Part shown: one piece after another, positions 129 through 58,011 of the stretch
Layout: the number at the start of each line of letters is the position of its first letter
How positions within the stretch are numbered: position 1 is the stretch's first letter
Origin: Auanema rhodensis
Lineage: Eukaryota; Animalia; Nematoda
NCBI GenBank assembly: GCA_964057225.1
Contig: OZ059895.1
Coordinates: 19,034,001 to 19,098,000, forward strand
Direction of reading: 5' to 3'
Length of the DNA stretch: 64,000 nucleotides
Position numbers and translations under genes: made by a program
Notes under the pieces: generated by a model
Seen by the model: only the letters and a program-made list of their open reading frames with translations
Databases searched by the model: none
Told to the model about the DNA's origin: nothing

Positions 129-3100
129 TGTGCCTGGTGAATGTCCCTTTTTCTCAAAAATCATCAACTAAAATCAAATAAAAATAATCTGTGGTTGGGT
201 ATTCAGATGTGTAGAATCTGAAATTCCTAGTGAGATTTGCCTAGGACTTCTCCTTATTCCGGAAAACAGGTTTATATCGTGCCCATCCATAAGATTTGTT
301 CACAAAAAGTTCAGGCTCTATTCACGTTGTGCCTGGTGAATGTCCCTTTTTCTCAAAAATCATCAACTAAAATCAAATAAAAATAATCTGAGGTTGGGTA
401 TTCAGATGGGTAGAATCTGAAATTCCTAGTGAGATTCGGATAGGACTTCTCTTTTTTCCGGAAAAGAGGTTTATATCGTGCCCATCCATAAGATTTGTTC
501 ACAAAAAGTTCAGGCTCTATTCACGTTGTGTCTGGTGAATGTCCCTTTTTCTCAAAAATCATCAACTAAAATCAAATAAAAATAATCTGAGGTTGGGTAT
601 TCAGATGGGTAGAATCTGAAATTCCTAGTGAGATTCGGATAGGACTTCTCTTTTTTCCGGAAAAGAGGTTTATATCGTGCCCATCCATAAGATTTGTTCA
701 CAAAAAGTTCAGGCTCTATTCACGTTGTGCCTGGTGAATGTCCCTTTTTCTCAAAAATCATCAACTAAAATCAAATAAAAATAATCTGTGGTTGGGTATT
801 CAGATGGGTAGAATCTGAAATTCCTAGTGAGATTCGGATAGGACTTCTCTTTTTTCCGGAAAAGAGGTTTATATCGTGCCCATCCATAAGATTTGTTCAC
901 AAAAAGTTCAGGCTCTATTCACGTTGTGCCTGGTGAATGTCCCTTTTTCTCAAAAATCAATAACTAAAATCAAATAAAAATAATCTGTGGTTGGGTATTC
1001 AGATGTGTAGAATCTGAAATTCCTAGTGAGATTTGCCTAGGACTTCTCCTTATTCCGGAAAACAGGTTTATATCGTGCCCATCCATAAGATTTGTTCACA
1101 AAAAGTTCAGGCTCTATTCACGTTGTGCCTGGTGAATGTCCCTTTTTCTCAAAAATCATCAACTAAAATCAAATAAAAATAATCTGTGGTTTGGTATTCA
1201 GATGTGTAGAATCTGAAATTCCTAGTGAGATTTGCCTAGGACTTCTCCTTATTCCGGAAAACAGGTTTATATCGTGCCCATCCATAAGATTTGTTCACAA
1301 AAAGTTCAGGCTCTATTCACGTTGTGCCTGGTGAATGTCCCTTTTTCTTGAAAATCATCAACTAAAATCAAATAAAAATAATCTGAGGTTGGGTATTCAG
1401 ATGGGTAGAATCTGAAATTCCTAGTGAGATTCGGATAGGACTTCTCTTTTTTCCGGAAAAGAGGTTTATATCGTGCCCATCCATAAGATTTGTTCACAAA
1501 AAGTTCAGGCTCTATTCACGTTGTGCCTGGTGAATGTCCCTTTTTCTCAAAAATCATCAACTAAAATCAAATAAAAATAATCTGAGGTTGGGTATTCAGA
1601 TGGGTAGAATCTGAAATTCCTAGTGAGATTCGGATAGGACTTCTCTTTTTTCCGGAAAAGAGGTTTATATCGTGCCCATCCATAAGATTTGTTCACAAAA
1701 AGTTCAGGCTCTATTCACGTTGTGCCTGGTGAATGTCCCTTTTTCTCAAAAATCAATAACTAAAATCAAATAAAAATAATCTGTGGTTGGGTATTCAGAT
1801 GTGTAGAATCTGAAATTCCTAGTGAGATTCGGATAGGACTTCTCTTTTTTCCGGAAAAGAGGTTTATATCGTGCCCATCCATAAGATTTGTTCACAAAAA
1901 GTTCAGGCTCTATTCACGTTGTGCCTGGTGAATGTCCCTTTTTCTCAAAAATCAATAACTAAAATCAAATAAAAATAATCTGTGGTTTGGTATTCAGATG
2001 TGTAGAATCTGAAATTCCTAGTGAGATTTGCCTAGGACTTCTCCTTATTCCGGAAAACAGGTTTATATCGTGCCCATCCATAAGATTTGTTCACAAAAAG
2101 TTCAGGCTCTATTCACGTTGTGCCTGGTGAATGTCCCTTTTTCTCAAAAATCAATAACTAAAATCAAATAAAAATAATCTGTGGTTGGGTATTCAGATGT
2201 GTAGAATCTGAAATTCCTAGTGAGATTCGGATAGGACTTCTCTTTTTTCCGGAAAAGAGGTTTATATCGTGCCCATCCATAAGATTTGTTCACAAAAAGT
2301 TCAGGCTCTATTCACGTTGTGCCTGGTGAATGTCCCTTTTTCTCAAAAATCAATAACTAAAATCAAATAAAAATAATCTGTGGTTGGGTATTCAGATGTG
2401 TAGAATCTGAAATTCCTAGTGAGATTCGGATAGGACTTCTCTTTTTTCCGGAAAAGAGGTTTATATCGTGCCCATCCATAAGATTTGTTCACAAAAAGTT
2501 CAGGCTCTATTCACGTTGTGCCTGGTGAATGTCCCTTTTTCTCAAAAATCAATAACTAAAATCAAATAAAAATAATCTGTGGTTTGGTATTCAGATGTGT
2601 AGAATCTGAAATTCCTAGTGAGATTTGCCTAGGACTTCTCCTTATTCCGGAAAACAGGTTTATATCGTGCCCATCCATAAGATTTGTTCACAAAAAGTTC
2701 AGGCTCTATTCACGTTGTGCCTGGTGAATGTCCCTTTTTCTCAAAAATCATCAACTAAAATCAAATAAAAATAATCTGTGGTTGGGTATTCAGATGTGTA
2801 GAATCTGAAATTCCTTGTGAGATTTGGCTAGGACTTCTCCTTATTCCGGAAAACAGGTTTATATCGTGCTCATCCATAAGATTTGTTCACAAAAAGTTCA
2901 GGCTCTATTCACGTTGTGCCTGGTGAATGTCCCTTTTTCTCAAAAATCATCAACTAAAATCAAATAAAAATAATCTGAGGTTGGGTATTCAGATGGGTAG
3001 AATCTGAAATTCCCAGTGAGATTCGGATAGGACTTCTCTTTTTTCTGGAAAAGAGGTTTATATCGTGCCCATCCATAAGATTTGTTCACAAAAAGTTCAG

Positions 3101-6100
3101 GCTCTATTCACGTTGTGCCTGGTGAATGTCCCTTTTTCTCAAAAATCATCAACTAAAATCAAATAAAAAAAATCTGTGGTTGGGTATTCAGATGTGTAGA
3201 ATCTGAAATTCCTAGTGAGATTTGCCTAGGACTTCTCCTTATTCCGGAAAACAGGTTTATATCGTGCTCATCCATAAGATTTGTTCACAAAAAGTTCAGG
3301 CTCTATTCACGTTGTGCCTGGTGAATGTCCCATTTTCTCAAAAATCATCAACTAAAATCAAATAAAAATAATCTGTGGTTGGGTATTCAGATGTGTAGAA
3401 TCTGAAATTCCTAGTGAGATTTGCCTAGGACTTCTCCTTATTCCGGAAAACAGGTTTATATCGTGCCCATCCATAAGATTTGTTCACAAAAAGTTCAGGC
3501 TCTATTCAAGTTGTGCCCGGTGAATGTCCCTTTTTCTCAAAAATCATCAACTAAAATCAAATAAAAATAATCTGTGGTTGGGTATTCAGATGTGTAGAAT
3601 CTGAAATTCCTAGTGAGATTTGCCCAGGACTTCTCCTTATTCCGGAAAACAGGTTTATATCGTGCCCATCCATAAGATTTGTTCACAAAAAGTTCAGGCT
3701 CTATTCACGTTGTGCCTGGTGACTGTCCCTTTTTCTCAAAAATCATCAACTAAAATCAAATAAAAATAATCTGTGGTTGGGTATTCAGATGTGTAGAATC
3801 TGAAATTCCTAGTGAGATTTGCCCAGGACTTCTCCTTATTCCGGAAAACAGGTTTATATCGTGCCCATCCATAAGATTTGTTCACAAAAAGTTCAGGCTC
3901 TATTCACGTTGTGCCTGGTGACTGTCCCTTTTTCTCAAAAATCATCAACTAAAATCAAAAAAAAATAATCTGAGGTTGGGTATTCAGATGTGCAGAATCT
4001 GAAATTCCTAGTGAGATTTGCCCAGGACTTCTCCTTATTCCGGAAAACAGGTTTATATCGTGCCCATCCATAAGATTTGTTCACAAAAAGTTCAGGCTCT
4101 ATTCACGTTGTGCCTGGTGAATGTCCCTTTTTCTCAAAAATCATCAACTAAAATCAAATAAAAATAATCTGTGGTTGGGTATTCAGATGGGTAGAATCTG
4201 AAATTCCTAGTGAGATTTGCCTAGGACTTCTCCTTATTCCGGAAAACAGGTTTATATCGTGCCCATCCATAAGATTTGTTCACAAAAAGTTCAGGCTCTA
4301 TTCACGTTGTGCCTGGTGAATGTCCCTTTTTCTCAAAAATCATCAACTAAAATCAAATAAAAATAATCTGAGGTTGGGTATTCAGATGGGTAGAATCTGA
4401 AATTCCTAGTGAGATTCGGATAGGACTTCTCTTTTTTCCGGAAAAGAGGTTTATATCGTGCCCATCCATAAGATTTGTTCACAAAAAGTTCAGGCTCTAT
4501 TCACGTTGTGCCTGGTGAATGTCCCTTTTTCTCAAAAATCATCAACTAAAATCAAATAAAAATAATCTGAGGTTGGGTATTCAGATGTGTAGAATCTGAA
4601 ATTCCTAGTGAGATTTGCCTAGGACTTCTCCTTATTCCGGAAAACAGGTTTATATCGTGCCCATCCATAAGATTTGTTCACAAAAAGTTCAGGCTCTATT
4701 CACGTTGTGCCTGGTGAATGTCCCTTTTTCTCAAAAATCAATAACTAAAATCAAATAAAAATAATATGTGGTTGGGTATTCAGATGTGTAGAATCTGAAA
4801 TTCCTAGTGAGATTTGCCTAGGACTTCTCCTTATTCAGGAAAACAGGTTTATATCGAGCCCATCCAGAAGATTTGTTCACAAAAAGTTCAGGCTCTATTC
4901 ACGTTGTGCCTGGTGAATGTCCCTTTTTCTCAAAAATCATCAACTAAAATCAAATAAAAATAATCTGAGGTTGGGTATTCAGATGGGTAGAATCTGAAAT
5001 TCCTAGTGAGATTCGGATAGGACTTCTCTTTTTTCCGGAAAAGAGGTTTATATCGTGCCCATCCATAAGATTTGTTCACAAAAAGTTCAGGCTCTATTCA
5101 CGTTGTGCCTGGTGAATGTCCCTTTTTCTCAAAAATCATCAACTAAAATCAAATAAAAATAATCTGTGGTTGGGTATTCAGATGTGTAGAATCTGAAATT
5201 CCTTGTGAGATTTGGCTAGGACTTCTCCTTATTCCGGAAAACAGGTTTATATCGTGCTCATCCATAAGATTTGTTCACAAAAAGTTCAGGCTCTATTCAC
5301 GTTGTGCCTGGTGAATGTCCCTTTTTCTCAAAAATCATCAACTAAAATCAAATAAAAATAATCTGTGGTTGGGTATTCAGATGTGTAGAATCTGAAATTC
5401 CTAGTGAGATTTGCCTAGGACTTCTCCTTATTCCGGAAAACAGGTTTATATCGTGCCCATCCATAAGATTTGTTCACAAAAAGTTCAGGCTCTATTCACG
5501 TTGTGCCTGGTGAATGTCCCTTTTTCTCAAAAATCATCAACTAAAATCAAATAAAAATAATCTGTGGTTGGGTATTCAGATGTGTAGAATCTGAAATTCC
5601 TTGTGAGATTTGGCTAGGACTTCTCCTTATTCCGGAAAACAGGTTTATATCGTGCTCATCCATAAGATTTGTTCACAAAAAGTTCAGGCTCTATTCACGT
5701 TGTGCCTGGTGAATGTCCCTTTTTCTCAAAAATCATCAACTAAAATCAAATAAAAATAATCTGAGGTTGGGTATTCAGATGGGTAGAATCTGAAATTCCT
5801 AGTGAGATTCGGATAGGACTTCTCTTTTTTCCGGAAAAGAGGTTTATATCGTGCCCATCCATAAGATTTGTTCACAAAAAGTTCAGGCTCTATTCACGTT
5901 GTGCCTGGTGAATGTCCCTTTTTCTCAAAAATCATCAACTAAAATCAAATAAAAATAATCTGTGGTTGGGTATTCAGATGTGTAGAATCTGAAATTCCTA
6001 GTGAGATTTGCCTAGGACTTCTCCTTATTCCGGAAAACAGGTTTATATCGTGCCCATCCATAAGATTTGTTCACAAAAAGTTCAGGCTCTATTCACGTTG

Positions 6101-9100
6101 TGCCTGGTGAATGTCCCTTTTTCTCAAAAATCAATAACTAAAATCAAATAAAAATAATATGTGGTTGGGTATTCAGATGTGTAGAATCTGAAATTCCTAG
6201 TGAGATTTGCCTAGGACTTCTCCTTATTCCGGAAAACAGGTTTATATCGTGCCCATCCATATGATTTGTTCACAAAAAGTTCAGGCTCTATTCACGTTGT
6301 GCCTGGTGAATGTCCCTTTTTCTCAAAAATCATCAACTAAAATCAAATAAAAATAATCTGTGGTTGGGTATTCAGATGTGTAGAATCTGAAATTCCTTGT
6401 GAGATTTGGCTAGGACTTCTCCTTATTCCGGAAAACAGGTTTATATCGTGCCCATCCATAAGATTTGTTCACAAAAAGTTCAGGCTCTATTCACGTTGTG
6501 CCTGGTGAATGTCCCTTTTTCTCAAAAATCATCAACTAAAATCAAATAAAAATAATCTGTGGTTGGGTATTCAGATGTGTAGAATCTGAAATTCCTTGTG
6601 AGATTTGGCTAGGACTTCTCCTTATTCCGGAAAACAGGTTTATATCGTGCCCATCCATAAGATTTGTTCACAAAAAGTTCAGGCTCTATTCACGTTGTGC
6701 CTGGTGAATGTCCCTTTTTCTCAAAAATCATCAACTAAAATCAAATAAAAATAATCTGTGGTTGGGTATTCAGATGTGTAGAATCTGAAATTCCTAGTGA
6801 GATTTGGCTAGGATTTCTCGTTATTCCGGAAAACAGGTTTATATCGTGCCCATCCATAAGATTTGTTCACAAAAAGTTCAGGCTCTATTCACGTTGTGCC
6901 TGGTGAATGTCCCTTTTTCTCAAAAATCATCAACTAAAATCAAATAAAAATAATCTGAGGTTGGGTATTCAGATGTGTAGAATCTGAAATTCCTAGTGAG
7001 ATTTGCCTAGGACTTCTCCTTATTCCGGAAAACAGGTTTATATCGTGCCCATCCATAAGATTTGTTCACAAAAAGTTCAGGCTCTATTCACGTTGTGCCT
7101 GGTGAATGTCCCTTTTTCTCAAAAATCATCAACTAAAATCAAATAAAAATAATATGTGGTTGGGTATTCAGATGTGTAGAATCTGAAATTCCTTGTGAGA
7201 TTTGGCTAGGACTTCTCCTTATTCCGGAAAACAGGTTTATATCGTGCTCATCCATAAGATTTGTTCACAAAAAGTTCAGGCTCTATTCAAGTTGTGCCCG
7301 GTGATTGTCCCTTTTTCTCAAAAATCATCAACTAAAATCAAATTAAAATAATCTGTGGTTGGGTGTTCAGATGTGTAGAATCTGAAATTCCTAGTGAGAT
7401 TTGGCTAGGATTTCTCCTTATTCCGGAAAACAGGTTTATATCGTGCTCATCCATAAGATTTGTTCACAAAAAGTTCAGGCTCTATTCACGTTGTGCCCGG
7501 TGATTGTCCCTTTTTCTCAAAAATCATCAACTAAAATCAAATTAAAATAATCTGTGGTTGGGTGTTCAGATGTGTAGAATCTGAAATTCCTAGTGAGATT
7601 TGGCTAGGATTTCTCCTTATTCCGGAAAACAGGTTTATATCGTGCTCATCCATAAGATTTGTTCACAAAAAGTTCAGGCTCTATTCAAGTTGTGCCCGGT
7701 GATTGTCCCTTTTTCTCAAAAATCATCAACTAAAATCAAATTAAAATAATCTGTGGTTGGGTGTTCAGATGTGTAGAATCTGAAATTCCTAGTGAGATTT
7801 GGCTAGGATTTCTCCTTATTCCGGAAAACAGGTTTATATCGTGCTCATCCATAAGATTTGTTCACAAAAAGTTCAGGCTCTATTCACGTTGTGCCCGGTG
7901 ATTGTCCCTTTTTCTCAAAAATCATCAACTAAAATCAAATTAAAATAATCTGTGGTTGGGTGTTCAGATGTGTAGAATCTGAAATTCCTAGTGAGATTTG
8001 GCTAGGATTTCTCCTTATTCCGGAAAACAGGTTTATATCGTGCTCATCCATAAGATTTGTTCACAAAAAGTTCAGGCTCTATTCACGTTGTGCCCGGTGA
8101 TTGTCCCTTTTTCTCAAAAATCATCAACTAAAATCAAATTAAAATAATCTGTGGTTGGGTGTTCAGATGTGTAGAATCTGAAATTCCAAGTGAGATTTGG
8201 CTAGGATTTCTCCTTATTCCGGAAAACAGGTTTATATCGTGCTCATCCATAAGATTTGTTCACAAAAAGTTCAGGCTCTATTCACGTTGTGCCCGGTGAA
8301 TGTCCCTTTTTCTCAAAAATCATCAACTAAAATCAAATTAAAATAATCTGTGGTTGGGTGTTCAGATGTGCAGAATCTGAAATTCCTAGTGAGATTTGGC
8401 TAGGACTGCTCTTTATTCCGGAAAATAGGTTTATATCGTGCCCATCCATAAGATTTGTTCACAAAAAGTTCAGGCTCTATTCACGTTGTGCCTGGTGAAT
8501 GTCCCTTTTTCTCAAAAATCATCAACTAAAATCAAATTAAAATAATCTGAGGTTGGGTATTCAGATGTGTAGAATCTGAAATTCCTAGTGAGATTCGGCT
8601 AGGACTTCTCTTTATTCCGGAAAAGAGGTTTATATCGTGCCCATCCATAAGATTTGTTCACAAAAAGTTCAGGCTCTATTCAAGTTGTGCCCGGTGAATG
8701 TCCCTTTTTCTCGAAAATCATCAACTAAAATCAAATAAAAATAATCTGTGGTTGGGTATTCAGATGTGTAGAATCTGAAATTCCTAGTGAGATTTGGCTA
8801 GGACTTCTCCTTATTCCGGAAAACAGGTTTATATCGTGCCCATCCATAAGATTTGTTCACAAAAAGTTCAGGCTCTATTCACGTTGTGCCTGGTGAATGT
8901 CCCTTTTTCTCAAAAATCATCAACTAAAATCAAATAAAAATAATCTGTGGTTGGGTATTCAGATGTGTAGAATCTGAAATTCCTAGTGAGATTCGGCTAG
9001 GACTTCTCTTTATTCCGGAAAAGAGGTTTATATCGTGCCCATCCATAAGATTTGTTCACAAAAAGTTCAGGCTCTATTCAAGTTGTGCCCGGTGAATGTC

Positions 9101-12100
9101 CCTTTTTCTCGAAAATCATCAACTAAAATCAAATAAAAATAATCTGTGGTTGGGTATTCAGATGTGTAGAATCTGAAATTCCTAGTGAGATTTGGCTAGG
9201 ACTTCTCCTTATTCCGGAAAACAGGTTTATATCGTGCCCATCCATAAGATTTGTTCACAAAAAGTTCAGGCTCTATTCACGTTGTGCCTGGTGAATGTCC
9301 CTTTTTCTCAAAAATCATCAACTAAAATCAAATAAAAATAATCTGTGGTTGGGTATTCAGATGTGTAGAATCTGAAATTCCTAGTGAGATTCGGCTAGGA
9401 CTTCTCTTTATTCCGGAAAAGAGGTTTATATCGTGCCCATCCATAAGATTTGTTCACAAAAAGTTCAGGCTCTATTCAAGTTGTGCCCGGTGAATGTCCC
9501 TTTTTCTCAAAAATCATCAACTAAAATCAAATTAAAATAATCTGAGGTTGGGTTTTCAGATGTGTAGAATCTGAAATTCCTAGTGAGATTTGGCTAGGAT
9601 TTCTCGTTATTCCGGAAAACAGGTTTATATCGTGCTCATCCATAAGATTTGTTCACAAAAAGTTCAGGCTCTATTCACGTTGTGCCTGGTGAATGTCCCT
9701 TTTTCTCAAAAATCATCAACTAAAATCAAATAAAAATAATCTGTGGTTGGGTATTCAGATGTGTAGAATCTGAAATTCCTAGTGAGATTCGGATGGGACT
9801 TCTCTTTTTTCCGGAAAAGAGGTTTATATCGTGCCCATCCATAAGATTTGTTCACAAAAAGTTCAGGCTCTATTCAAGTTGTGCCCGGTGAATGTCCCTT
9901 TTTCTCAAAAATCATCAACTAAAATCAAATAAAAATAATCTGTGGTTTGGTATTCAGATGTGTAGAATCTGAAATTCCTAGTGAGATTCGGCTAGGACTT
10001 CTCTTTATTCCGGAAAAGAGGTTTATATCGTGCCCATCCATAAGATTTGTTCACAAAAAGTTCAGGCTCTATTCAAGTTGTGCCCGGTGAATGTCCCTTT
10101 TTCTCAAAAATCATCAACTAAAATCAAATAAAAATAATCTGTGGTTTGGTATTCAGATGTGTAGAATCTGAAATTCCTAGTGAGATTCGGCTAGGACTTC
10201 TCTTTATTCCGGAAAAGAGGTTTATATCGTGCCCATCCATAAGATTTGTTCACAAAAAGTTCAGGCTCTATTCAAGTTGTGCCCGGTGAATGTCCCTTTT
10301 TCTCAAAAATCATCAACTAAAATCAAATAAAAATAATCTGTGGTTTGGTATTCAGATGTGTAGAATCTGAAATTCCTAGTGAGATTCGGCTAGGACTTCT
10401 CTTTATTCCGGAAAAGAGGTTTATATCGTGCCCATCCATAAGATTTGTTCACAAAAAGTTCAGGCTCTATTCAAGTTGTGCCCGGTGAATGTCCCTTTTT
10501 CTCAAAAATCATCAACTAAAATCAAATTAAAATAATCTGTGGTTGGGTATTCAGATGTGTAGAATCTGAAATTCCTAGTGAGATTCGGCTAGGACTTCTC
10601 TTTATTCCGGAAAAGAGGTTTATATCGTGCCCATCCATAAGATTTGTTCACAAAAAGTTCAGGCTCTATTCAAGTTGTGCCCGGTGAATGTCCCTTTTTC
10701 TCAAAAATCATCAACTAAAATCAAATAAAAATAATCTGTGGTTTGGTATTCAGATGTGTAGAATCTGAAATTCCTAGTGAGATTCGGATGGGACTTCTCT
10801 TTTTTCCGGAAAAGAGGTTTATATCGTGCCCATCCATAAGATTTGTTCACAAAAAGTTCAGGCTCTATTCAAGTTGTGCCCGGTGAATGTCCCTTTTTCT
10901 CAAAAATCATCAACTAAAATCAAATAAAAATAATCTGTGGTTTGGTATTCAGATGTGTAGAATCTGAAATTCCTAGTGAGATTCGGCTAGGACTTCTCTT
11001 TATTCCGGAAAAGAGGTTTATATCGTGCCCATCCATAAGATTTGTTCACAAAAAGTTCAGGCTCTATTCAAGTTGTGCCCGGTGAATGTCCCTTTTTCTC
11101 AAAAATCATCAACTAAAATCAAATAAAAATAATCTGTGGTTTGGTATTCAGATGTGTAGAATCTGAAATTCCTAGTGAGATTCGGCTAGGACTTCTCTTT
11201 ATTCCGGAAAAGAGGTTTATATCGTGCCCATCCATAAGATTTGTTCACAAAAAGTTCAGGCTCTATTCAAGTTGTGCCCGGTGAATGTCCCTTTTTCTCA
11301 AAAATCATCAACTAAAATCAAATAAAAATAATCTGTGGTTTGGTATTCAGATGTGTAGAATCTGAAATTCCTAGTGAGATTCGGCTAGGACTTCTCTTTA
11401 TTCCGGAAAAGAGGTTTATATCGTGCCCATCCATAAGATTTGTTCACAAAAAGTTCAGGCTCTATTCAAGTTGTGCCCGGTGAATGTCCCTTTTTCTCAA
11501 AAATCATCAACTAAAATCAAATTAAAATAATCTGTGGTTGGGTATTCAGATGTGTAGAATCTGAAATTCCTAGTGAGATTCGGCTAGGACTTCTCTTTAT
11601 TCCGGAAAAGAGGTTTATATCGTGCCCATCCATAAGATTTGTTCACAAAAAGTTCAGGCTCTATTCAAGTTGTGCCCGGTGAATGTCCCTTTTTCTCAAA
11701 AATCATCAACTAAAATCAAATTAAAATAATCTGTGGTTGGGTATTCAGATGTGTAGAATCTGAAATTCCTAGTGAGATTTGGCTAGGATTTCTCCTTATT
11801 CCGGAAAACAGGTTTATATCGTGCCCATCCATAAAATTTGTTCACAAAAAGTTCAGGCTCTATTCACGTTGTGCCTGGTGAATGTCCCTTTTTCTCAAAA
11901 ATCATCAACTAAAATCAAATAAAAATAATCTGTGGTTGGGTATTCAGATGTGTAGAATCTGAAATTCCTAGTGAGATTTGGATGGGACTTCTCTTTTTTC
12001 CGGAAAAGAGGTTTATATCGTGCCCATCCATAAGATTTGTTCACAAAAAGTTCAGGCTCTATTCAAGTTGTGCCCGGTGAATGTCCCTTTTTCTCAAAAA

Positions 12101-15100
12101 TCATCAACTAAAATCAAATTAAAATAATCTGTGGTTGGGTATTCAGATGTGTAGAATCTGAAATTCCTAGTGAGATTTGGCTAGGATTTCTCGTTATTCC
12201 GGAAAACAGGTTTATATCGTGCTCATCCATAAGATTTGTTCACAAAAAGTTCAGGCTCTATTCACGTTGTGCCTGGTGAATGTCCCTTTTTCTCAAAAAT
12301 CATCAACTAAAATCAAATAAAAATAATCTGTGGTTGGGTATTCAGATGTGTAGAATCTGAAATTCCTAGTGAGATTCGGATGGGACTTCTCTTTTTTCCG
12401 GAAAAGAGGTTTATATCGTGCCCATCCATAAGATTTGTTCACAAAAAGTTCAGGCTCTATTCAAGTTGTGCCCGGTGAATGTCCCTTTTTCTCAAAAATC
12501 ATCAACTAAAATCAAATAAAAATAATCTGTGGTTTGGTATTCAGATGTGTAGAATCTGAAATTCCTAGTGAGATTCGGCTAGGACTTCTCTTTATTCCGG
12601 AAAAGAGGTTTATATCGTGCCCATCCATAAGATTTGTTCACAAAAAGTTCAGGCTCTATTCAAGTTGTGCCCGGTGAATGTCCCTTTTTCTCAAAAATCT
12701 TCAACTAAAATCAAATTAAAATAATCTGTGGTTGGGTATTCAGATGTGTAGAATCTGAAATTCCTAGTGAGATTCGGCTAGGACTTCTCTTTATTCCGGA
12801 AAAGAGGTTTATATCGTGCCCATCCATAAGATTTGTTCACAAAAAGTTCAGGCTCTATTCAAGTTGTGCCCGGTGAATGTCCCTTTTTCTCAAAAATCAT
12901 CAACTAAAATCAAATTAAAATAATCTGTGGTTGGGTATTCAGATGTGTAGAATCTGAAATTCCTAGTGAGATTTGGCTAGGATTTCTCCTTATTCCGGAA
13001 AACAGGTTTATATCGTGCCCATCCATAAAATTTGTTCACAAAAAGTTCAGGCTCTATTCACGTTGTGCCTGGTGAATGTCCCTTTTTCTCAAAAATCATC
13101 AACTAAAATCAAATAAAAATAATCTGTGGTTGGGTATTCAGATGTGTAGAATCTGAAATTCCTAGTGAGATTTGGATGGGACTTCTCTTTTTTCCGGAAA
13201 AGAGGTTTATATCGTGCCCATCCATAAGATTTGTTCACAAAAAGTTCAGGCTCTATTCAAGTTGTGCCCGGTGAATGTCCCTTTTTCTCAAAAATCATCA
13301 ACTAAAATCAAATTAAAATAATCTGTGGTTGGGTATTCAGATGTGTAGAATCTGAAATTCCTAGTGAGATTTGGCTAGGATTTCTCCTTATTCCGGAAAA
13401 CAGGTTTATATCGTGCCCATCCATAAGATTTGTTCACAAAAAGTTCAGGCTCTATTCACGTTGTGCCTGGTGAATGTCCCTTTTTCTCAAAAATCATCAA
13501 CTAAAATCAAATAAAAATAATCTGTGGTTGGGTATTCAGATGTGTAGAATCTGAAATTCCTAGTGAGATTCGGATGGGACTTCTCTTTTTTCCGGAAAAG
13601 AGGTTTATATCGTGCCCATCCATAAGATTTGTTCACAAAAAGTTCAGGCTCTATTCAAGTTGTGCCCGGTGAATGTCCCTTTTTCTCAAAAATCATCAAC
13701 TAAAATCAAATTAAAATAATCTGAGGTTGGGTTTTCAGATGTGTAGAATCTGAAATTCCTAGTGAGATTTGGCTAGGATTTCTCCTTATTCCGGAAAACA
13801 GGTTTATATCGTGCCCATCCATAAGATTTGTTCACAAAAAGTTCAGGCTCTATTCAAGTTGTGCCCGGTGAATGTCCCTTTTTCTCAAAAATCATCAACT
13901 AAAATCAAATAAAAATAATCTGTGGTTTGGTATTCAGATGTGTAGAATCTGAAATTCCTAGTGAGATTCGGCTAGGACTTCTCTTTATTCCGGAAAAGAG
14001 GTTTATATCGTGCCCATCCATAAGATTTGTTCACAAAAAGTTCAGGCTCTATTCAAGTTGTGCCCGGTGAATGTCCCTTTTTCTCAAAAATCATCAACTA
14101 AAATCAAATTAAAATAATCTGTGGTTGGGTATTCAGATGTGTAGAATCTGAAATTCCTAGTGAGATTCGGCTAGGACTTCTCTTTATTCCGGAAAAGAGG
14201 TTTATATCGTGCCCATCCATAAGATTTGTTCACAAAAAGTTCAGGCTCTATTCAAGTTGTGCCCGGTGAATGTCCCTTTTTCTCAAAAATCATCAACTAA
14301 AATCAAATTAAAATAATCTGTGGTTGGGTATTCAGATGTGTAGAATCTGAAATTCCTAGTGAGATTTGGCTAGGATTTCTCCTTATTCCGGAAAACAGGT
14401 TTATATCGTGCCCATCCATAAAATTTGTTCACAAAAAGTTCAGGCTCTATTCACGTTGTGCCTGGTGAATGTCCCTTTTTCTCAAAAATCATCAACTAAA
14501 ATCAAATAAAAATAATCTGTGGTTGGGTATTCAGATGTGTAGAATCTGAAATTCCTAGTGAGATTTGGATGGGACTTCTCTTTTTTCCGGAAAAGAGGTT
14601 TATATCGTGCCCATCCATAAGATTTGTTCACAAAAAGTTCAGGCTCTATTCAAGTTGTGCCCGGTGAATGTCCCTTTTTCTCAAAAATCATCAACTAAAA
14701 TCAAATTAAAATAATCTGTGGTTGGGTATTCAGATGTGTAGAATCTGAAATTCCTAGTGAGATTTGGCTAGGATTTCTCGTTATTCCGGAAAACAGGTTT
14801 ATATCGTGCTCATCCATAAGATTTGTTCACAAAAAGTTCAGGCTCTATTCACGTTGTGCCTGGTGAATGTCCCTTTTTCTCAAAAATCATCAACTAAAAT
14901 CAAATAAAAATAATCTGTGGTTGGGTATTCAGATGTGTAGAATCTGAAATTCCTAGTGAGATTCGGATGGGACTTCTCTTTTTTCCGGAAAAGAGGTTTA
15001 TATCGTGCCCATCCATAAGATTTGTTCACAAAAAGTTCAGGCTCTATTCAAGTTGTGCCCGGTGAATGTCCCTTTTTCTCAAAAATCATCAACTAAAATC

Positions 15101-16993
15101 AAATAAAAATAATCTGTGGTTTGGTATTCAGATGTGTAGAATCTGAAATTCCTAGTGAGATTCGGCTAGGACTTCTCTTTATTCCGGAAAAGAGGTTTAT
15201 ATCGTGCCCATCCATAAGATTTGTTCACAAAAAGTTCAGGCTCTATTCAAGTTGTGCCCGGTGAATGTCCCTTTTTCTCAAAAATCTTCAACTAAAATCA
15301 AATTAAAATAATCTGTGGTTGGGTATTCAGATGTGTAGAATCTGAAATTCCTAGTGAGATTCGGCTAGGACTTCTCTTTATTCCGGAAAAGAGGTTTATA
15401 TCGTGCCCATCCATAAGATTTGTTCACAAAAAGTTCAGGCTCTATTCAAGTTGTGCCCGGTGAATGTCCCTTTTTCTCAAAAATCATCAACTAAAATCAA
15501 ATTAAAATAATCTGTGGTTGGGTATTCAGATGTGTAGAATCTGAAATTCCTAGTGAGATTTGGCTAGGATTTCTCCTTATTCCGGAAAACAGGTTTATAT
15601 CGTGCCCATCCATAAAATTTGTTCACAAAAAGTTCAGGCTCTATTCACGTTGTGCCTGGTGAATGTCCCTTTTTCTCAAAAATCATCAACTAAAATCAAA
15701 TAAAAATAATCTGTGGTTGGGTATTCAGATGTGTAGAATCTGAAATTCCTAGTGAGATTTGGATGGGACTTCTCTTTTTTCCGGAAAAGAGGTTTATATC
15801 GTGCCCATCCATAAGATTTGTTCACAAAAAGTTCAGGCTCTATTCAAGTTGTGCCCGGTGAATGTCCCTTTTTCTCAAAAATCATCAACTAAAATCAAAT
15901 TAAAATAATCTGTGGTTGGGTATTCAGATGTGTAGAATCTGAAATTCCTAGTGAGATTTGGCTAGGATTTCTCCTTATTCCGGAAAACAGGTTTATATCG
16001 TGCCCATCCATAAGATTTGTTCACAAAAAGTTCAGGCTCTATTCACGTTGTGCCTGGTGAATGTCCCTTTTTCTCAAAAATCATCAACTAAAATCAAATA
16101 AAAATAATCTGTGGTTGGGTATTCAGATGTGTAGAATCTGAAATTCCTAGTGAGATTCGGATGGGACTTCTCTTTTTTCCGGAAAAGAGGTTTATATCGT
16201 GCCCATCCATAAGATTTGTTCACAAAAAGTTCAGGCTCTATTCAAGTTGTGCCCGGTGAATGTCCCTTTTTCTCAAAAATCATCAACTAAAATCAAATTA
16301 AAATAATCTGAGGTTGGGTTTTCAGATGTGTAGAATCTGAAATTCCTAGTGAGATTTGGCTAGGATTTCTCCTTATTCCGGAAAACAGGTTTATATCGTG
16401 CCCATCCATAAGATTTGTTCACAAAAAGTTCAGGCTCTATTCAAGTTGTGCCCGGTGAATGTCCCTTTTTCTCAAAAATCATCAACTAAAATCAAATTAA
16501 AATAATCTGAGGTTGTGCATTCAGATGTGTAGAATCTGAAATTCCTAGTGAGATTTGGCTAGGATTTCTCCTTATTCCGGAAAACAGGTTTATATCGTGC
16601 TCATCTATAAGATTTGTTCACAAAAAGTTCAGGCTCTATTCACGTTGTGCCCGGTGATTGTCCCTTTTTCTCAAAAATCATCAACTAAAATCAAATTAAA
16701 ATAATCTGAGGTTGGGTATTCAGATGTGCAGAATCTGAAATTCCTAGTGAGATTTGGCTAGGACTTCTCTTTATTCCGGAAAACAGGTTTATATCGTGCT
16801 CATCCATAAGATTTGTTCACAAAAAGTTCAGGCTCTATTCAAGTTGTGCCCGGTGAATGTCCCTTTTTCTCAAAAATCATCAACTAAAATCAAATAAAAA
16901 TAATCTGAGTTTGGGCATTCAGATGGGTAAAATCTGAAATTCCTAGTGAGATTTGGCTAGGACTTCTCCTTATTCCGGAAAATAGGTTTATAT
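129..16993. repeat. 199-bp tandem satellite array, ~85 copies
   Basis: The GCCTGGTGAATGTCCC landmark recurs at 132, 331, 530 and onward (period 199). Copies differ almost only by substitutions. 16865 bp / 199 = ~84.7 units. Confidence 0.99.
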
Positions 16994-17218
16994 TCCTTAC
17001 CATTATCAGTTTGTATCTTTTTTGGTGTTCTTTTACTTTTTGTAAAGATAGATTCCAAAGCTTCTGCAGTTTCTTTACCTGTCTTACTTTTTAATGGTAC
17101 TACCCATGCAAACTTAGTGAGACAATCTATAATTGTTAAAAGATTTCTATAGCCTTTGTTTTCTTCCGCGTAGGGAATCTTTTCTACGAGATCTGATTGC
17201 CGCTTCTTCCTAACTATG
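16994..17218 (-). mobile_element. Truncated Maverick/Polinton-type (retroviral-like DDE) integrase fragment
   Basis: Translation QSDLVE..YAEENKGYRNLLTIIDCLTKFAWVVPLKSKTGKETAEALESIFTKSKRTPKKIQTDNGKEY matches the Maverick integrase pattern WQADL..NKGY.Y.LT.ID.FSK.AW..PLK.K..QTDNG.EF. The first two catalytic Asp are present. The part carrying the Glu is replaced by satellite. Confidence 0.88.
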
Positions 17219-17280
17219 ACCAAGCGCAATCACACACGCAAACGCGTTGGTCCAGAGTGGATGAGAGTGGCGTGTGACCA

Positions 17281-17290
17281 GAGACGCAGA
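17281..17290 (+). promoter_or_regulatory. GAGACGCAGA motif (common nematode promoter / EOR-1-type motif) upstream of the protease gene
   Basis: Exact GAGACGCAGA ~340 bp upstream of the ATG at 17627; function is inferred. Confidence 0.35.
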
Positions 17291-17626
17291 GAAAGCGAGA
17301 AACATCGCATTATTCCATTAACTTGCTTAAATAGAAAAGAGACCTCTTTTTTCAGGAAAAAATCATTTTTATTTTCTCCCGCTGTCTGCTCCCAAATTGT
17401 TGGGTTCCTCTTATGGTGAAATTTTGTTTTTTGTTGTCATAAAATTCATGTTCTCTTACTTAATTTTTAGTATTACTCCATTTAGGAGCAATAATTCTAT
17501 TAAGTTGCGGTGCAATCTAACTGTGCTAGTTTTTTTCCGGAAATGGACGCTTTTCCTTTGTGTTAGTTAGTTTGTAGAGTTTGTGTAAGCAATTAATTCT
17601 TTATTTTCCGATTCTCATCTTACAAA

Positions 17627-18898
17627 ATGTCTGGTACAGTCACGATAAAGATGCACGACAAAGAAGTTGAATTTGATTTAACTGACAATAAGATCACCTT
17701 CATCTCCATCAAATCAGCCTGCCTTCTTCCCAATGAGGCGATTGTTTCTTTGTCATACGAACTCAATGGCCGCCGAAAATTTTGCCAGTAAGTCACATTT
17801 CTGATTTTAAAATATTTTATCTGATTTAATTTCTATTTCAATTAATTTAGGAGCCAAGTGGTCCCCGAACCGTGTTTTGTGCTTCCCGCTGGCTGGCCGA
17901 CCATGCAGTTCAATGTTGAATCCGATCGAGTACCATCACGACCATCAACGCCTGCTGATCAATGTATTTTCTAAGTATTTTAACACCTTTTATTCATTTT
18001 TTTTTACATTTTAGGATTTATTTTAAACATTGTCAATTTATTTATCAATTTTAGGCGCTACACAACCGAAGAAGCAGAAAATTGATTTTGAACAGTTCCC
18101 TGTTGATGGGGATTTGGCCGCTTCTATTGGACAATATGCTCTGTTTTACAATGTGAAAAGCGACGACTACAAAAGATGCGCGATCCCGTTGAGCACGAAA
18201 CTCGCAGCAACATTTCAACATGGCGAGAACAAAAAGATCAAAATAGGTGTGTTAGTAATGGGTTTATTTTAATTGGATATTTTTAGATGATGAAATTGTA
18301 ATTCGCTCGTGGTCGGATGAGAAGTTTAATGTAAAAACTCGTGTTGTGAGAATCATTGAAGAACTCGATGTGATCATCTTGAAATCGGACGAAAAAGATT
18401 TGTGTAATCAAAGTTTGCCTTTGAGTCCAGTTCCGCCTCAAAAAGGAATGGAATATCTGATGGTAATTTTTTATCAAATGAAATTTTTTCTAAATTACCC
18501 TTAAAAACACTTTTTTTAAGATGGGATATTCGATTCTTCACAACAAGACAAGCCATCTTTCACTGTCTACCGGAATCATCGCTAGTGATGTGAAGCGAAG
18601 ATTTCGATATACGGGATCGAGTGGCTCATTCAAAGGAGATAGTGGTGCCGGATGTTGGAACAAAAAGGGGCAATTAATAGGAATGCAAGTCGAGGTAGAA
18701 AAGATGGGGCACACAAAAGATGACAAAGGACGACCTGCATCTCCTACATGCAGAGGTCGTTGTTGTATCGTCGCAGTCTATGATGTTCTCGTGGCGATTC
18801 GGGTAATATTAATTGTTATTTTCACTCAAACAATTTTTGGATTTTAGGATTTGTTGCCACCGGCCGACTCTGATGATGAATATGAATTGAACGAATGA
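17627..18898 (+). CDS. Intracellular trypsin-like serine protease, WOSP-like (Maverick cargo type), 324 aa, 6 exons
   Basis: Exons 17627-17787, 17851-17963, 18055-18246, 18287-18462, 18521-18802, 18848-18898 splice GT-AG in frame (975 nt). Catalytic triad: His in LAATFQH (18219), Asp in ELDVIIL (18367), Ser in FKGDSGAGCW (18641). No signal peptide; basic PKKQK motif. The WOSP assignment is inferred from fold and Maverick context. Confidence 0.88.
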
Positions 18899-19180
18899 AT
18901 TTCTTGATCTTCTTTATCGGTTGTTTCTCGCTGCTCATAAAATTTCTTTTTGTCTAAAAATTATTTTCTTTTTGTATTAAAACATTTTTCTCGGGTCACA
19001 AAATATTCTTTTGGAGGAAGGAAGGCTTTTTGAAGAAAGAAGCCGAGGTTTTTCAAGTTTACTATATTTGGTTCCGTAATACTTGATTTATTTCAGTTAA
19101 TTATACGTTTTAGTGAAATTATACTAGAAAATACAATAGTCTAACATATCAGAAAATATTTAGTACTGTCAAGTACAATT

Positions 19181-19207
19181 CTAGGCTTAATCGTATGCAC
19201 TGCCTAT
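19181..19207. other. Telomere-like inverted motif TAGGC-N15-GCCTA (candidate sequence-for-elimination / telomere addition site)
   Basis: cTAGGCttaatcgtatgcactGCCTAt. The left arm TAGGCTTA is an 8-nt match to the nematode (TTAGGC)n telomere. It lies near the transition from repeat/mobile DNA to unique DNA. Confidence 0.35.
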
Positions 19208-19643
19208 AGTTTCTTTCAAAAACATTATCATTAAAGAACTTTTTAAGCATAAAATTTATTAAACAAATTCACACAAGCGCGCTAAATTAGAATAAAGGAG
19301 GAGTGGGTTAGGCATTTGTTAATAATTATTATGTTGATTCTATCATTAAATTATAATTAATTATCTTAATCTTTATATGTTTCAAATTATTCAAATGTTT
19401 ATTAATGATTTCCAGTTTAAAATAAATGAAAAACAATTATTCAGTTAACAATATTTATTATATAAAATTATTTTATATTTTTAAACAGTATAAAAAAGTA
19501 TAAAACAATATAATAATTTTAAAAATATAATATAATTGATTAAAATCTGAATTAAAACATTTATTTTACATAATTTTCTTTCATTTCTCGTAATTTTCAA
19601 ATCGTGTACAGCCGGTTTTTGTTTTTGAAATTTTCAAAATCTT

Positions 19644-19714
19644 ACGTAAACGTGGTTTACGTGGTCTGTCCGTCAAAGGGTATATAAGCAAATTTTTTTC
19701 AGTTGACAATCATT
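19644..19714 (+). promoter_or_regulatory. Pol II core promoter: upstream palindrome, TATA box and initiator
   Basis: ACGTAAAC-gtg-GTTTACGT inverted repeat (19644-19662), GTATATAAG TATA (19680-19688) and TCATT Inr (19710-19714). The Inr A is 31 nt after the first T of the TATA. Confidence 0.7.
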
Positions 19715-20915
19715 TCTCCGACTGTCGCCGTCCGAATAGGTCGACAGCTTCTGAGCTCTTCAGACTGCAGTCCTGTGTCAGCTCTGAAGTACTCGCGGAA
19801 AAACAAAAGAATGAGCAAGGTAATTTATTATTTAACTTGAAGCTTTCATTTATAAGCTTATTCTCAGAAATTCCATAAGATCAACTGAAAAAATAACTTC
19901 TATATGATAGTTCTGCAGAAGGAAGACTGCAACAGCTGGCATTACGGTCAACAGCTCCTGCTCTTTTCAAACTTCGAAGTACTGGGGAAAAAACATGGTA
20001 TGGAATTAAAAAAAACATGATATATTCGTAGTCTTGAAATTTACAGAACTCGGAACTACGGATATCCTGAACTATAAGCTTTCTGGACAAAGGATCATAT
20101 TTTTCGGACTTCTTGGGTCCCTCCTGGAGTCTTTCGATTCTTACGCAGATCTTCTTCGACTCTTTGGTTGGGTTGTTCCTCGGCTCCTCCTCGGCTCTTC
20201 GGTTGTTCCTGGACCATTCGGTTCCTCCTGGACCATTCAGTTCCTCCTGGACCATTCGGTTCCTCCTGGACTCTTCGGTTTTTCCTCGATTGTCTCTGCG
20301 CTCTCCCTCGGCTCTTCCTCGATTGTTCCTCTGCTCTCCCTCGGCTTTTTGGTTACTCCTGGACTCAAATCTTCTTCGACTCTTCGGATCTTCCTCTTGT
20401 TCCTCGTCTATCGTTTCTTCCTCTGCTTCTTCTTGGTTCTTCCTAGGCTCTTCGGCTCTTCGGCTCTTCCTCGATTGTTCCTCGGCTCTTCGGTTCTTCC
20501 TAGGCTCCTCGCCTCTTCGATTCTTCCTAGGCTCTTCGGTTCCTCCTGGACTCTTCGGTTCTTCCTCGGCTCTTCGGTTCTTACTCAGCTTCTCCTCAGT
20601 TCTTCGGTTCTTCATCGGTTTTTCGGTTCCACCTGGACTCTTCGGGTCTTCCTAGGCTTCTCGGTTCTTGCTAGGCTTCTCGGTTCTTGCTCGGTTGTTC
20701 CTCGGTTCCTTCTCAGATCTGCTTCTACTCTTCCGTTCTTTCTCTGCTTCTTCTCCGTTCTTCCTCGGCTCTTCGGTCCTTCTTCGGCTCCTCCTGGAAT
20801 CTTCGGTTTCTTATCAGATTTTCTTTGGCTCTTCGATTCTAAAAATTTGTATTTTTCTTGTTCAGTCACAGAAATGTCTTGCCAAAAATGTTTTATTCAA
20901 TATAATCATAGCTAA
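19712..20915 (+). ncRNA. Putative spliced transcript (lncRNA or nonsense-interrupted orphan gene) ending in a pyrimidine-rich minisatellite
   Basis: TATA/Inr followed by two typical-size introns, 19820-19867 (48 nt, GTAATT..TTCTCAG) and 19998-20046 (49 nt, GTATGG..TTACAG). The first ATG (19811) gives only MSKKFHKIN-stop. The 3' end is uncertain. Confidence 0.5.
20100..20835. repeat. Degenerate pyrimidine-rich minisatellite (~16-19-nt units, e.g. GGACCATTCGGTTCCTCCT, TTCCTCGGCTCTTCGG)
   Basis: Consecutive 19-nt units visible at ~20211-20270; strong C/T versus G/A strand asymmetry. Confidence 0.9.
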
Positions 20916-20951
20916 TAGGAAATTTACAACCAGTTTAAGTTTAAAGAATGT

Positions 20952-22326
<1,375 letters not shown>

Positions 22327-46213: not shown

Positions 46214-48447
46214 ATGAACATTATGATGGATAGTAAAGCATCTTCAGGCATGGTCATTGAATTTCTAAAAACCTTTATCAGAACACTACAGAGTGTTTTC
46301 TTTCTCTTCATTTCTTATACTTTTTAACGTTGATTAATAATATTTATTCATATTTCTTCCCCTCCTACCCCATTTCTCAAGTTCGATTTTTTGTTAATTT
46401 TTTAAATTTTATACGGAAATTTCTTTTTTCATTTCTTTTTTATTTTTATTTTTTTTGTTTACATACAGATGTTTTCTAATTTTTTTTAATTTCAGAACAG
46501 TTGGTCGCCAACCAACTTTTCCAATCCAATGATCTCTCAACCAATGATAACACATCCACCGATGACACATCAGTGGGATGTCCAGCTTGCTTCTCAAAAG
46601 GTAACATTTTAAACAAAACAACCTTGGACTATTCTAACTATTTGACTTCACTCTCTTTCTCTGTCATTTTCGCTTCATTTCAATGTCATTCCAGGCCTTC
46701 AACGTGAGCCAAAAGCTTGCTGCACAAACTATTCCCAATCAGCCACAAACTGTACAATCTCGTGGTTCGAATGTTTGCGAATCAAGTTCAACTCCATACA
46801 CAGACGCTACTAATTGCAAAAAATCAAGTAACCATATAAAAAGACCAATGAATGCTTTTATGGTATGGTCTCAACTTGAGAGAAGAAAGATCTGTGAGCA
46901 TCAACCAGACATGCACAATGCTGAAATCAGCAAGCAGGTTCGTCAAGTTTCAATCTTTTTTTTTATTTTTGATTAGAAAATCTAGTATTTTTGAATTTTC
47001 TTATGGGGACGATTCCCTAAATGTCATTGATTCGCTTAGTTTATACGATTTTCTAGTTTTCTTTTAACCGAGACTATTTCAGTTGGGATCGAGATGGCGC
47101 CAATTATCTGAGGTTGAAAAGGCTCCATTCATTCAAGAAGCTGAACGTCTTCGTCTCATGCACATGCAGGTAACTATTTATTTTCTTTACTTTCAAAAAT
47201 CTGTTTTCCTAATTAAAGGAATATCCTGACTACAAGTACAAGCCAAGAAAGAAGGCAAAGAAGAACGCTGATGGAGCTGTACAAAACTCTCAAAACAATC
47301 AGAATAGCAGACCAGCATCTCCAAGAGGAAAAGGACAAAAAAGGTAATATTAATTTGAATACCATTCATTTTAAGTAAAATCATATTCTTTTTCAGACCA
47401 TCTCAACAAATGGGAGGAATGGGCGTTAGCATAAACGGTTCACAAGATTCTTATCCAGTTGGAAAAAGTATGAAAATTGATCACGATGGAGTTCATTCTG
47501 TGCCACCTTTCATTACATCATCTCCACAGGATGATATCAAAGCTTCACAGCAAAAGCAGCAGGTAAACATAACTTCTGTCTTCAACCTCTACATAGATAT
47601 CATCAAAATGTTTTTTTCGAATATTGACTCAAAACTTTTTCAGGAATTGCGCCTCTTTCATCCCGCTTATCCTTCACCCTCTGAATTCGGACATGCTCCA
47701 TTAACACCCGAATCAGGATTCTACGATGATTTCTACTCATCCTCATGTCCATTCAGTGTGTCAACTGGAGGCAGTCCACCAAGCAAAACACCTCTTCTCA
47801 TGCCAATGCAGATTATTGTAAGTTTTATATTCAAGTTTTCAAACAAGTTCTTCTCTCGCCGGAAGCTTTTTTTTCTGAAATGATCCAATTCTTATTCGAA
47901 TGTTTTACAGCCTCAAATGGATGTTTCACAACTTCATCCGACCTATCACCAGTCAACACACCCCATCGTACAAAACCAGCAAACGGCACAAGCAACAGCA
48001 ACAACTGGATCACAGATGATTCGACATGCTCAACCCGCTTCCCATTTCTTTGTTCCACAACAATCATCACCACTCCAACCATTAAACTCCTCTGATCAGG
48101 TATGTATTATTATGTAATATTTTATATATTGTACTATATATGTATATAGTTCAGTCAATACCATTTTCTGTAACTATTTCTAATTTGTAATACTATTATA
48201 GGATGATATGCGATCACATTCCTCTGGTTCTTCCGGCTACAGCAGCATCACAACTGATTCCACAGATCATGTGACCATGTCCTTCGGACATCAGCCTTTT
48301 GGCCAAAATTTTTCTGAAGCTGAGCTGTTGCCATCTATTTACGATTTCAACTTCACCGCTGCTGTCAACGGAGCACAAGGCTGGAACGATGCCATTTGGC
48401 AAGGCCATCTTACGAATGCTCCCGCTTTTGAGCACATTCCCATCTGA
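46214..48447 (+). CDS. sem-2: SoxC HMG-box transcription factor (SEM-2 orthologue), ~9 exons
   Basis: HMG box [35 protein letters not shown]|[29 protein letters not shown]|[12 protein letters not shown], preceded by [11 protein letters not shown]. Exons ~46214-46252, 46496-46600, 46695-46937, 47083-47169, 47219-47343, 47397-47562, 47644-47817, 47911-48099, 48202-48447. The first exon is least certain. Confidence 0.93.
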
Positions 48448-55863: not shown

Positions 55864-56213
55864 GGTTTCACTAAATAATATATATGCAAGATCATTCTTT
55901 TTATAACTTTATAACAATCAAGAGTATTATAATTGCAATTTTATATTAATATTTTACAAATTTCAAAAACTATAACGAAAAACTACGTACTCTTTTAAAT
56001 AAGAAATAATGCTCTATAGTCAATTTTCGCGCTCGATTGCTAAACGTTCTAAGTCATTCAAGTCTAAAATTATCATCATAGTATAAAAATATATATTTCT
56101 CTTCTATTTCGTGCTTTATCTCTTGTATGTTATCATGACGCTACTTTCTATTCATTATATTCTAAATGTATTCTGCATTCTGTATGTTAAATTATGTTTC
56201 TTTAGTTATAAAG
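55864..56213. promoter_or_regulatory. Short bidirectional promoter region between THADA and rpt-1, with an E2F-like TTTTCGCGC (56024-56032)
   Basis: Head-to-head ATGs 350 bp apart; the motif is seen directly and its function is inferred. Confidence 0.5.

Positions 56214-58011
<1,798 letters not shown>

Follow-up and report, generated by a model that had tools for sequence, protein, structure and literature searches.

A recombinant wosp protease gene beside an integrase fragment in the nematode Auanema rhodensis: a probable remnant of a horizontally delivered Maverick-type insertion

Proteases of a nematode family named WASP in the preprint of Widen et al. (10.1101/2022.07.12.499685), and later wosp (PMC10680173), are known cargo of Maverick elements. 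According to that preprint, approximately 20% of the family is found no more than 6 kb away from a core gene of a Maverick, the Caenorhabditis plicata prototype adjoins an integrase, near-identity that extends through introns is the signature of Maverick-mediated transfer, and the pattern of two modules within one gene corresponds to what is there termed "modularity" (10.1101/2022.07.12.499685). Maverick/Polinton elements themselves measure 13-25 kb and carry terminal inverted repeats, a protein-primed polymerase, a retroviral-like integrase, and capsid genes (PMC10748475). One member of the protease family, MSFT-1 of C. briggsae, consists of a ubiquitin-like domain and an HtrA-like protease and acts as a toxin, while most family members are not toxins (10.1101/2022.07.12.499685). 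Here we analyze a stretch of 64,000 nucleotides (nt) of the A. rhodensis genome (contig OZ059895.1, positions 19,034,001 to 19,098,000; hereafter the window), in which an intact wosp gene stands next to a fragment of an integrase gene.

The protease gene offers a clean, quantifiable case of Maverick-associated gene traffic between nematode genera: a single gene combines two modules that each match, at 97-100% identity and with their introns, copies of different species. We consider it quite probable that the locus represents the remains of a Maverick/Polinton-type insertion whose wosp (WASP) cargo was brought in by recent horizontal transfer. Transfer of the gene is strongly supported, and the readings of the gene as a toxin or as a domesticated host gene are unsupported.

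The protease gene, a recombinant of two modules

All positions are given in window numbering, and strand + is the forward strand. Searches and fold comparisons were performed with single exons, or with full-length relatives as proxies. A preliminary description of this DNA had proposed a complete, correctly spliced protease of 324 amino acids with a His/Asp/Ser triad, a basic PKKQK motif, and no signal peptide, and the gene model bears this out. Six exons (17627-17787, 17851-17963, 18055-18246, 18287-18462, 18521-18802, and 18848-18898) hold 321 in-frame codons without a stop, which together with 3 split codons give 324, and the five introns (40-91 bp) are all of the GT-AG type. The splice model is independently supported, because the exons align in colinear order with family proteins, because introns 3, 4, and 5 are exactly absent from L001, a 1234-bp intron-less contig of a close relative (Logan SRR33369742; approximately 92-94% nucleotide identity to exons 3-6), and because all ten splice dinucleotides are kept in the genes of three relatives. 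Most simply, L001 is a spliced transcript, in which case a sample that has been sequenced would express a close relative. The His, Asp, and Ser of the window protease occupy the catalytic columns of the family alignment. The PKKQK motif is located in exon 3, within a disordered linker whose motif is conserved in kind across the family. Judged by eye, a signal peptide is absent, and the N-terminus is the predicted first strand of the ubiquitin-like domain. The gene and its parts are as follows.

17627-18898, strand +: wosp (WASP) protease gene, 6 exons, 324 codons, intact (exon matches, splice model, catalytic triad).
17627-17946, strand +: module 1, exon 1, intron 1, and most of exon 2, predicted ubiquitin-like N-terminal domain (97.5-98.8% nucleotide identity to the C. 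auriculariae copy L004; fold of a proxy).
17947-18106, strand +: junction segment, end of exon 2, intron 2, and that part of exon 3 which encodes the linker and its basic motif (approximately 80% nucleotide identity to the M. belari and C. niphades copies, approximately 69% to the C. auriculariae copy).
18107-18898, strand +: module 2, predicted HtrA-like serine protease domain with His, Asp, and Ser (93-100% nucleotide identity to L002 and L003; Trypsin_2 in relatives; fold of a proxy).

The genes of relatives, namely Mesorhabditis belari (L002), C. niphades (L003), and C. auriculariae (L004), were compared with the window gene with zero flank, together with L001. Caenorhabditis sp. 36, to which one of the closest proteins belongs, is C. 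niphades, a member of the Japonica group with a genome GC content of 45-47%; the GC content in the window is 24-46%, and the window accordingly belongs to a different species. At the protein level, exons 3, 4, 5, and 6 are 87, 100, 92, and 87% identical to the M. belari protein P0030 and 89, 100, 94, and 87% identical to the Caenorhabditis sp. 36 protein P0026. For exons 1 and 2, by contrast, the identity is 94% and 100%, respectively, to P0010 of C. auriculariae, a protein that in its protease part reaches just 61-66%. The same division is found at the nucleotide level. Module 1 follows the C. auriculariae gene through intron 1 (98.4% identity), while module 2, compared in 80-nt steps, is mostly 97-100% identical to L002 and L003, with identities of 97.5%, 98%, and 100% for introns 3, 4, and 5, respectively. 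The segment between the two modules has a source outside the sampled copies. A module 1 like that of C. auriculariae joined to a protease module like that of M. belari and C. niphades occurs in no database match, and the comparison shows the window gene to be a natural recombinant of two modules.

Near-identity of introns to this degree is not the outcome of selection on the protein. Whatever the host may be, two or more of these near-identities span a species boundary and one or more a genus boundary. Synonymous divergence (dS) between the window gene and the C. niphades copy is 0.105. The suggestion that the gene was horizontally delivered, made in the preliminary description, is thereby strongly supported by exons and introns that are near-identical to copies in other genera. 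It follows from the near-identities of the modules that arrival was recent and that recombination took place between cargo lineages.

The relatives themselves show further features of the same kind. Positions 266-1227 of L002 and 375-1335 of L003 are 98.9% identical over 962 nt, introns included, and the M. belari and C. niphades wosp genes constitute a cross-genus transfer pair in their own right; C. niphades is missing from the species table of the preprint, whose text reports a C. virilis member as closest to an M. belari member (10.1101/2022.07.12.499685). The C. auriculariae copy L004 (CAJGYM010000010.1:1274178-1275486) has an annotated product of 224 residues. Against the window exons it displays two frame-shifting indel runs; the copy has probably decayed, and its gene model has probably been forced.

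Base composition had also been remarked on, in that the exons looked richer in CpG and in GC-ending codons than the rpt-1 and THADA genes. The difference holds: the GC content at third codon positions (GC3) of the protease is 0.427 (137/321), as against 0.307 (132/430) in rpt-1 (Fisher p=9e-4) and, from rough estimates based on open reading frames (ORFs), 0.32 in THADA and 0.38 in a Sox gene, and the ratio of observed to expected CpG is 1.11 in the protease and 0.66 in rpt-1. As evidence of foreign origin it carries little weight, because it is modest and because the integrase fragment (GC3 0.29) does not share it. The introns of the protease gene (GC 0.185) can be compared with those of rpt-1 (GC 0.223).

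Family membership and predicted fold

A protein search with exon 5 against 1.84 billion representative proteins was followed by searches with two full-length matches as queries and by a cluster look-up. The search with exon 5 returned just 24 matches, and across the searches every match with a named source is a nematode protein. Exon 5 matches P0011 with E=4.9e-15 (P0011 falls in the same 90% cluster as P0044, CBG26403) and P0014 (B9Z55_017126) with 2.9e-9, while all six exons match P0033 (CRE_07855) with 49-64% identity. With the two full-length relatives as queries, the best matches reach 87-100% identity per exon. The named relatives that were found, P0044 (CBG26403), P0033 (CRE_07855), P0035 (GCK72_007928), and P0014 (B9Z55_017126), appear in the Data S1 table of Widen and colleagues (10.1101/2022.07.12.499685) as C.BRIG-WASP-1, C.REM-WASP-5, C.REM-WASP-6, and C.NIG-WASP-2, respectively. 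The window protease, described beforehand as WOSP-like from its sequence, is thus a true member of the WASP/WOSP family.

Domain assignments were made on full-length relatives, because single exons gave sub-threshold Pfam matches only (DUF5734, 0.022; Trypsin_2, 0.013). The two closest relatives match Trypsin_2 with 30.3 bits (P0026) and 29.0 bits (P0030) at a cut-off of 27.6, and a profile of the family weakly matches peptidase Do (E=8e-4), DegQ, DegS, and AlgW among Protein Data Bank (PDB) entries. The structure model of P0026, a proxy approximately 87-100% identical to exons 3-6, has a confidence (pLDDT) of 78, and its best PDB matches in Foldseek are Rv3671c, DegS, and HtrA1 (E approximately 2e-8, target TM approximately 0.7). 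For the N-terminal part, P0010 (94-100% identity to exons 1-2) served as the proxy, and the first 80 residues of its model reach pLDDT 88-93; they are best matched in the PDB by the N-terminal domain of TDP-43 (target TM 0.68), followed by UBL, FERM-F1, RBD, DIX, and PB1 folds, with weak E-values for these fold matches (6.7e-3 and above). The models show a predicted ubiquitin-like N-terminal domain and, C-terminal to it, a predicted HtrA-like serine protease with His, Asp, and Ser. No match to a PDZ domain was obtained in any exon or close relative, and only 16 codons follow the protease domain.

The presumed vehicle and competing explanations

The remaining features of the block in which the gene lies are listed here, from left to right.

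1-128, no strand: C/T-rich short-repeat stretch (blastn against 20150-20810, 72-86% identity on the same strand; same repeat family).
129-16993, no strand: 199-bp satellite array of 84.7 copies (TRF period 199, 96% matches, no indels).
16996-17229, strand -: integrase core (rve) fragment of 78 codons (Pfam rve, E=1e-7; foamy-virus integrase core in the PDB, E=2e-3).
17230-17626, no strand: spacer of 397 bp from the integrase fragment to the start of the protease gene, presumed to hold promoter and 5' untranslated region (UTR); its two short ORFs have no Pfam match.
18899-19880, no strand: AT-rich tail after the stop codon, GC 0.28, comprising 3' UTR and further sequence (no ORF of at least 45 amino acids, no terminal inverted repeat recognized).
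20150-20810, no strand: C/T-rich short-repeat stretch, GC 0.46, strongly skewed (same family as 1-128).

The preliminary description had placed a broken, Maverick-type integrase fragment divergently some 400 bp from the protease. The arrangement is confirmed, with the fragment on the minus strand and the gene on the plus strand, 397 bp apart, and the fragment is indeed broken: it covers positions 9-76 of the 102 of Pfam rve (32.5 bits, cut-off 32.6) and is truncated at both ends, with no internal stop and no frameshift. Its closest solved relative is the catalytic core of the foamy-virus (PFV) integrase, a weak match, and all of its PDB matches are retroviral integrase cores; the protein search yielded a sole relative, P0045 (118 residues, 57% identity). 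The term "Maverick-type" is one of context. A Maverick origin is inferred because a known Maverick cargo adjoins the fragment, because the pairing is that of C. plicata, and because neither a reverse transcriptase nor RNase H nor long terminal repeats (LTRs) occur in its vicinity. The fragment is presumed to be left over from the Maverick by which the protease gene was carried.

The satellite to its left shows approximately 97% identity at every multiple of 199, with copies in perfect register over 16.9 kb in all and no higher-order repeat detectable in identity at these multiples, and it has no similarity to 16994-19900. It occupies the space where the remainder of the presumed vehicle would sit. 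Satellite, integrase piece, protease gene, and AT-rich tail form a block of approximately 20 kb that is bracketed by the C/T-rich repeat stretches, which are either one repeat-rich gene split by the insertion or two flanking copies. The purine-rich minus strand of the right-hand repeat holds an open frame rich in Glu, Arg, Lys, and Pro (19881-20615); neither the ORFs of the flanking repeats nor those of the spacer match Pfam. A scan of the locus for bacterial-type promoters and terminators was uninformative, the gene being that of a nematode.

Further into the window lie genes that we take as those of the host.

46683-48450, strand +: gene with an HMG box of the Sox type (46683-46976 match Pfam HMG_box at E=3.4e-11), SoxC-like in its looks.
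Approximately 50900-55900, strand -: THADA/Trm732-like gene (TPR_Trm732_C, E=3.5e-5 for the ORF at 52228-52482, in outline agreement with the THADA label given to it beforehand).
56214-58011, strand +: rpt-1, encoding a proteasome ATPase in 434 codons spread over 12 exons; the eleven introns measure 38-64 bp and are of the GT-AG type.

The C. elegans counterpart of rpt-1 contains fewer introns, a difference suggestive of a rhabditid host richer in introns.

We propose that a Maverick/Polinton-type vehicle delivered the recombinant wosp gene not long ago. Most of the vehicle would have been lost in one or a few large events, its space would now be held by the 16.9-kb satellite, and the rve fragment would be left as the stump of its integrase. 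The gene would owe its intact state to youth rather than to selection. Its product would most likely be an intracellular protease whose level is set through the ubiquitin-like domain, as is reported for MSFT-1 (10.1101/2022.07.12.499685), and in its present state it would not be the toxin of a toxin-antidote pair.

Several observations weigh against this proposal. The integrase piece comprises just 78 codons and has a single relative, and no result separates a Maverick from other rve-bearing elements. Within the window, a further Maverick gene was not recognized, nor was any terminal inverted repeat or target-site duplication. A ratio of non-synonymous to synonymous divergence (dN/dS) of approximately 0.3-0.4 indicates some constraint on the family overall and is compatible with a function kept in the host. 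With regard to the missing genes, polymerase B, capsid, packaging ATPase, and maturation protease were not found among ORFs of at least 62 amino acids outside the host genes, of which selected ones were scanned against Pfam, and heavily decayed remnants could escape such a scan. With regard to the missing ends, terminal inverted repeats and target-site duplications were sought in 16900-21200, where only short AT-rich chance matches occur; one end would be lost in any case.

These absences lend themselves to an explanation in which the two genes are neighbors by coincidence, the rve fragment deriving from some element unconnected with the gene, be it an LTR retrotransposon or a different rve-bearing transposon, and the wosp gene having arrived or residing independently of it. 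Cores of the rve type occur in many element classes, the best solved relatives of the fragment are retroviral integrases, no other Maverick gene is recognized, and GC3 differs between fragment (0.29) and protease (0.43). However, no reverse transcriptase, RNase H, or LTR-like repeat was seen next to the fragment in the ORF list, the self-similarity comparison, or the repeat scans; the divergent pairing of integrase and protease is that described for the C. plicata prototype; and the cross-genus near-identity of the protease gene needs some vehicle. We regard coincidence as unlikely.

The preliminary description had reasoned that the cargo was kept intact while the vehicle decayed, as would be expected of a domesticated gene or a selfish toxin. 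Under domestication, the protease was recruited for a host function and came under purifying selection, and the useless vehicle was lost, which would account for a gene intact in its triad and splice sites, a vehicle that is almost wholly gone, and a dN/dS of 0.32-0.39 relative to the relatives. The measured constraint, however, spans the whole path between copies: dN/dS shows constraint somewhere on these paths and does not locate it on the lineage of the window gene. Codon changes specific to the window in exons 3-6, relative to three relatives, are 2 synonymous and 5 non-synonymous, which is near the neutral expectation and as expected without constraint. Introns are no more diverged than exons (2/143 mismatches in introns 3-5 and 12/506 in exons 4-6 relative to the M. 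belari copy), so little divergence has accumulated overall that even a gene free of constraint would still be intact, and the integrase piece, too, is without point damage. Because of the ratio of 2:5 and because introns are as conserved as exons, the intact state is explained by youth. The contrast between kept cargo and decayed vehicle consequently does not carry the earlier argument, and domestication appears rather improbable. More generally, when the arrival was recent and the vehicle was wrecked in one large event, selection need not be invoked to account for cargo that is intact next to the wreck.

A more elaborate version of the proposed transfer is speculative, and we rate it as rather doubtful: the copy might be a very recent three-way recombinant seen just after the destruction of its vehicle, an orphan cargo becoming a host gene or an incipient toxin with an unlinked or unrecognized antidote, in a host so far not known to belong to the network in which Mesorhabditis, the Japonica group, and basal Caenorhabditis exchange Mavericks. 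If this were true, the satellite that replaced the vehicle might be part of the disposal of the vehicle by the host.

The second possibility raised by the preliminary description was a selfish toxin like that of the msft-1/tlpr-1 element of C. briggsae. MSFT-1 had there been described as a fusion of wosp and krma, which is mistaken: the preprint describes a ubiquitin-like domain and an HtrA-like protease, and wosp and krma are two separate families (PMC10680173). In our searches, the C. briggsae protein P0031 (L5515_003724, 317 residues) agrees, at an offset of 8 residues, with the numbers published for the catalytic and toxicity-linked columns of MSFT-1; judged by this correspondence, P0031 appears to be MSFT-1 with a short start, the public model probably beginning at an internal methionine. 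The window protease belongs to the same family (exons 50-80% identical to P0031, approximately 63% overall, or 186/293 aligned residues) and possesses the catalytic triad, which is required for toxicity (10.1101/2022.07.12.499685). Yet at the column that MSFT-1 is reported to need for its toxicity (10.1101/2022.07.12.499685) it has the family-typical residue, shared by 13/15 rows, and the MSFT-1 state is found in P0031 only. Neither a MULE, a MULE-associated protein, a transposase-like ORF, nor another antidote candidate was found near the protease in the ORF list or in the comparison of the spacer ORFs with Pfam, and toxins are a minority of the family. A toxin role is thus highly improbable for this gene. 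That a strongly conserved gene was inherited vertically, or that the sequence stems from contamination or from a chimera in the assembly, is barely credible, given introns 3-5 that are 97.5-100% identical across genera and an intron 1 that is 98.4% identical to that of a third species, which protein selection cannot explain, given protease introns that resemble those of host rpt-1 in GC (0.185 and 0.223) and in size, and given a block that is continuous with host genes in one window.

Comparison with described systems

The protease domain has counterparts in the HtrA/Deg proteases (DegS, DegQ, HtrA1, and AlgW), with which it has in common a trypsin-like fold and the triad. It differs from them in having neither a PDZ domain nor a signal peptide, in an identity of just 13-18%, and in the additional ubiquitin-like domain. 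According to the models, the window protease would work like an HtrA protease domain, but it is not a canonical member of HtrA/Deg. The vertebrate protein FAM111A, whose protease domain is among the structural matches of the P0026 model, pairs ubiquitin-like domains with a trypsin-like protease, an outline that is also that of the window protein. FAM111A differs in size and lineage, and the likeness is an analogy only, with no sequence relationship shown.

With Maverick/Polinton elements (PMC10748475) the locus shares a piece of integrase core beside a known cargo gene, and its block of approximately 20 kb is within the size range of such elements. In contrast to a complete element, genes for a polymerase, capsid, ATPase, protease, or fusogen were not recognized in it, nor were terminal repeats, the block is mostly satellite, and it represents at most a remnant. 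MSFT-1 of the msft-1/tlpr-1 element has the same family, domain order, and catalytic columns as the window protease, with numbering that differs by one residue, whereas the window locus shows neither a MULE nor an antidote gene, and the residue typical of the family occupies its toxicity-linked column.

The closest described systems are the WASP/WOSP proteases themselves (10.1101/2022.07.12.499685, PMC10680173). Common to them and to the window protein is the architecture of a ubiquitin-like domain, a linker, and a PDZ-less HtrA-like protease in approximately 320 residues, and they are also alike in a distribution confined to nematodes, a neighboring gene that in the window is presumed to be of Maverick type, cross-genus near-identity that includes introns, and the shuffling of domains referred to as "modularity". 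The window copy is distinguished from the known ones by its absence from the protein collection searched and by a presumed vehicle that is down to 78 codons beside a large satellite. Family, vehicle, transfer, and domain shuffling have all been published before; what is new here is one more case, together with the numbers that describe it, and not a new kind of system.

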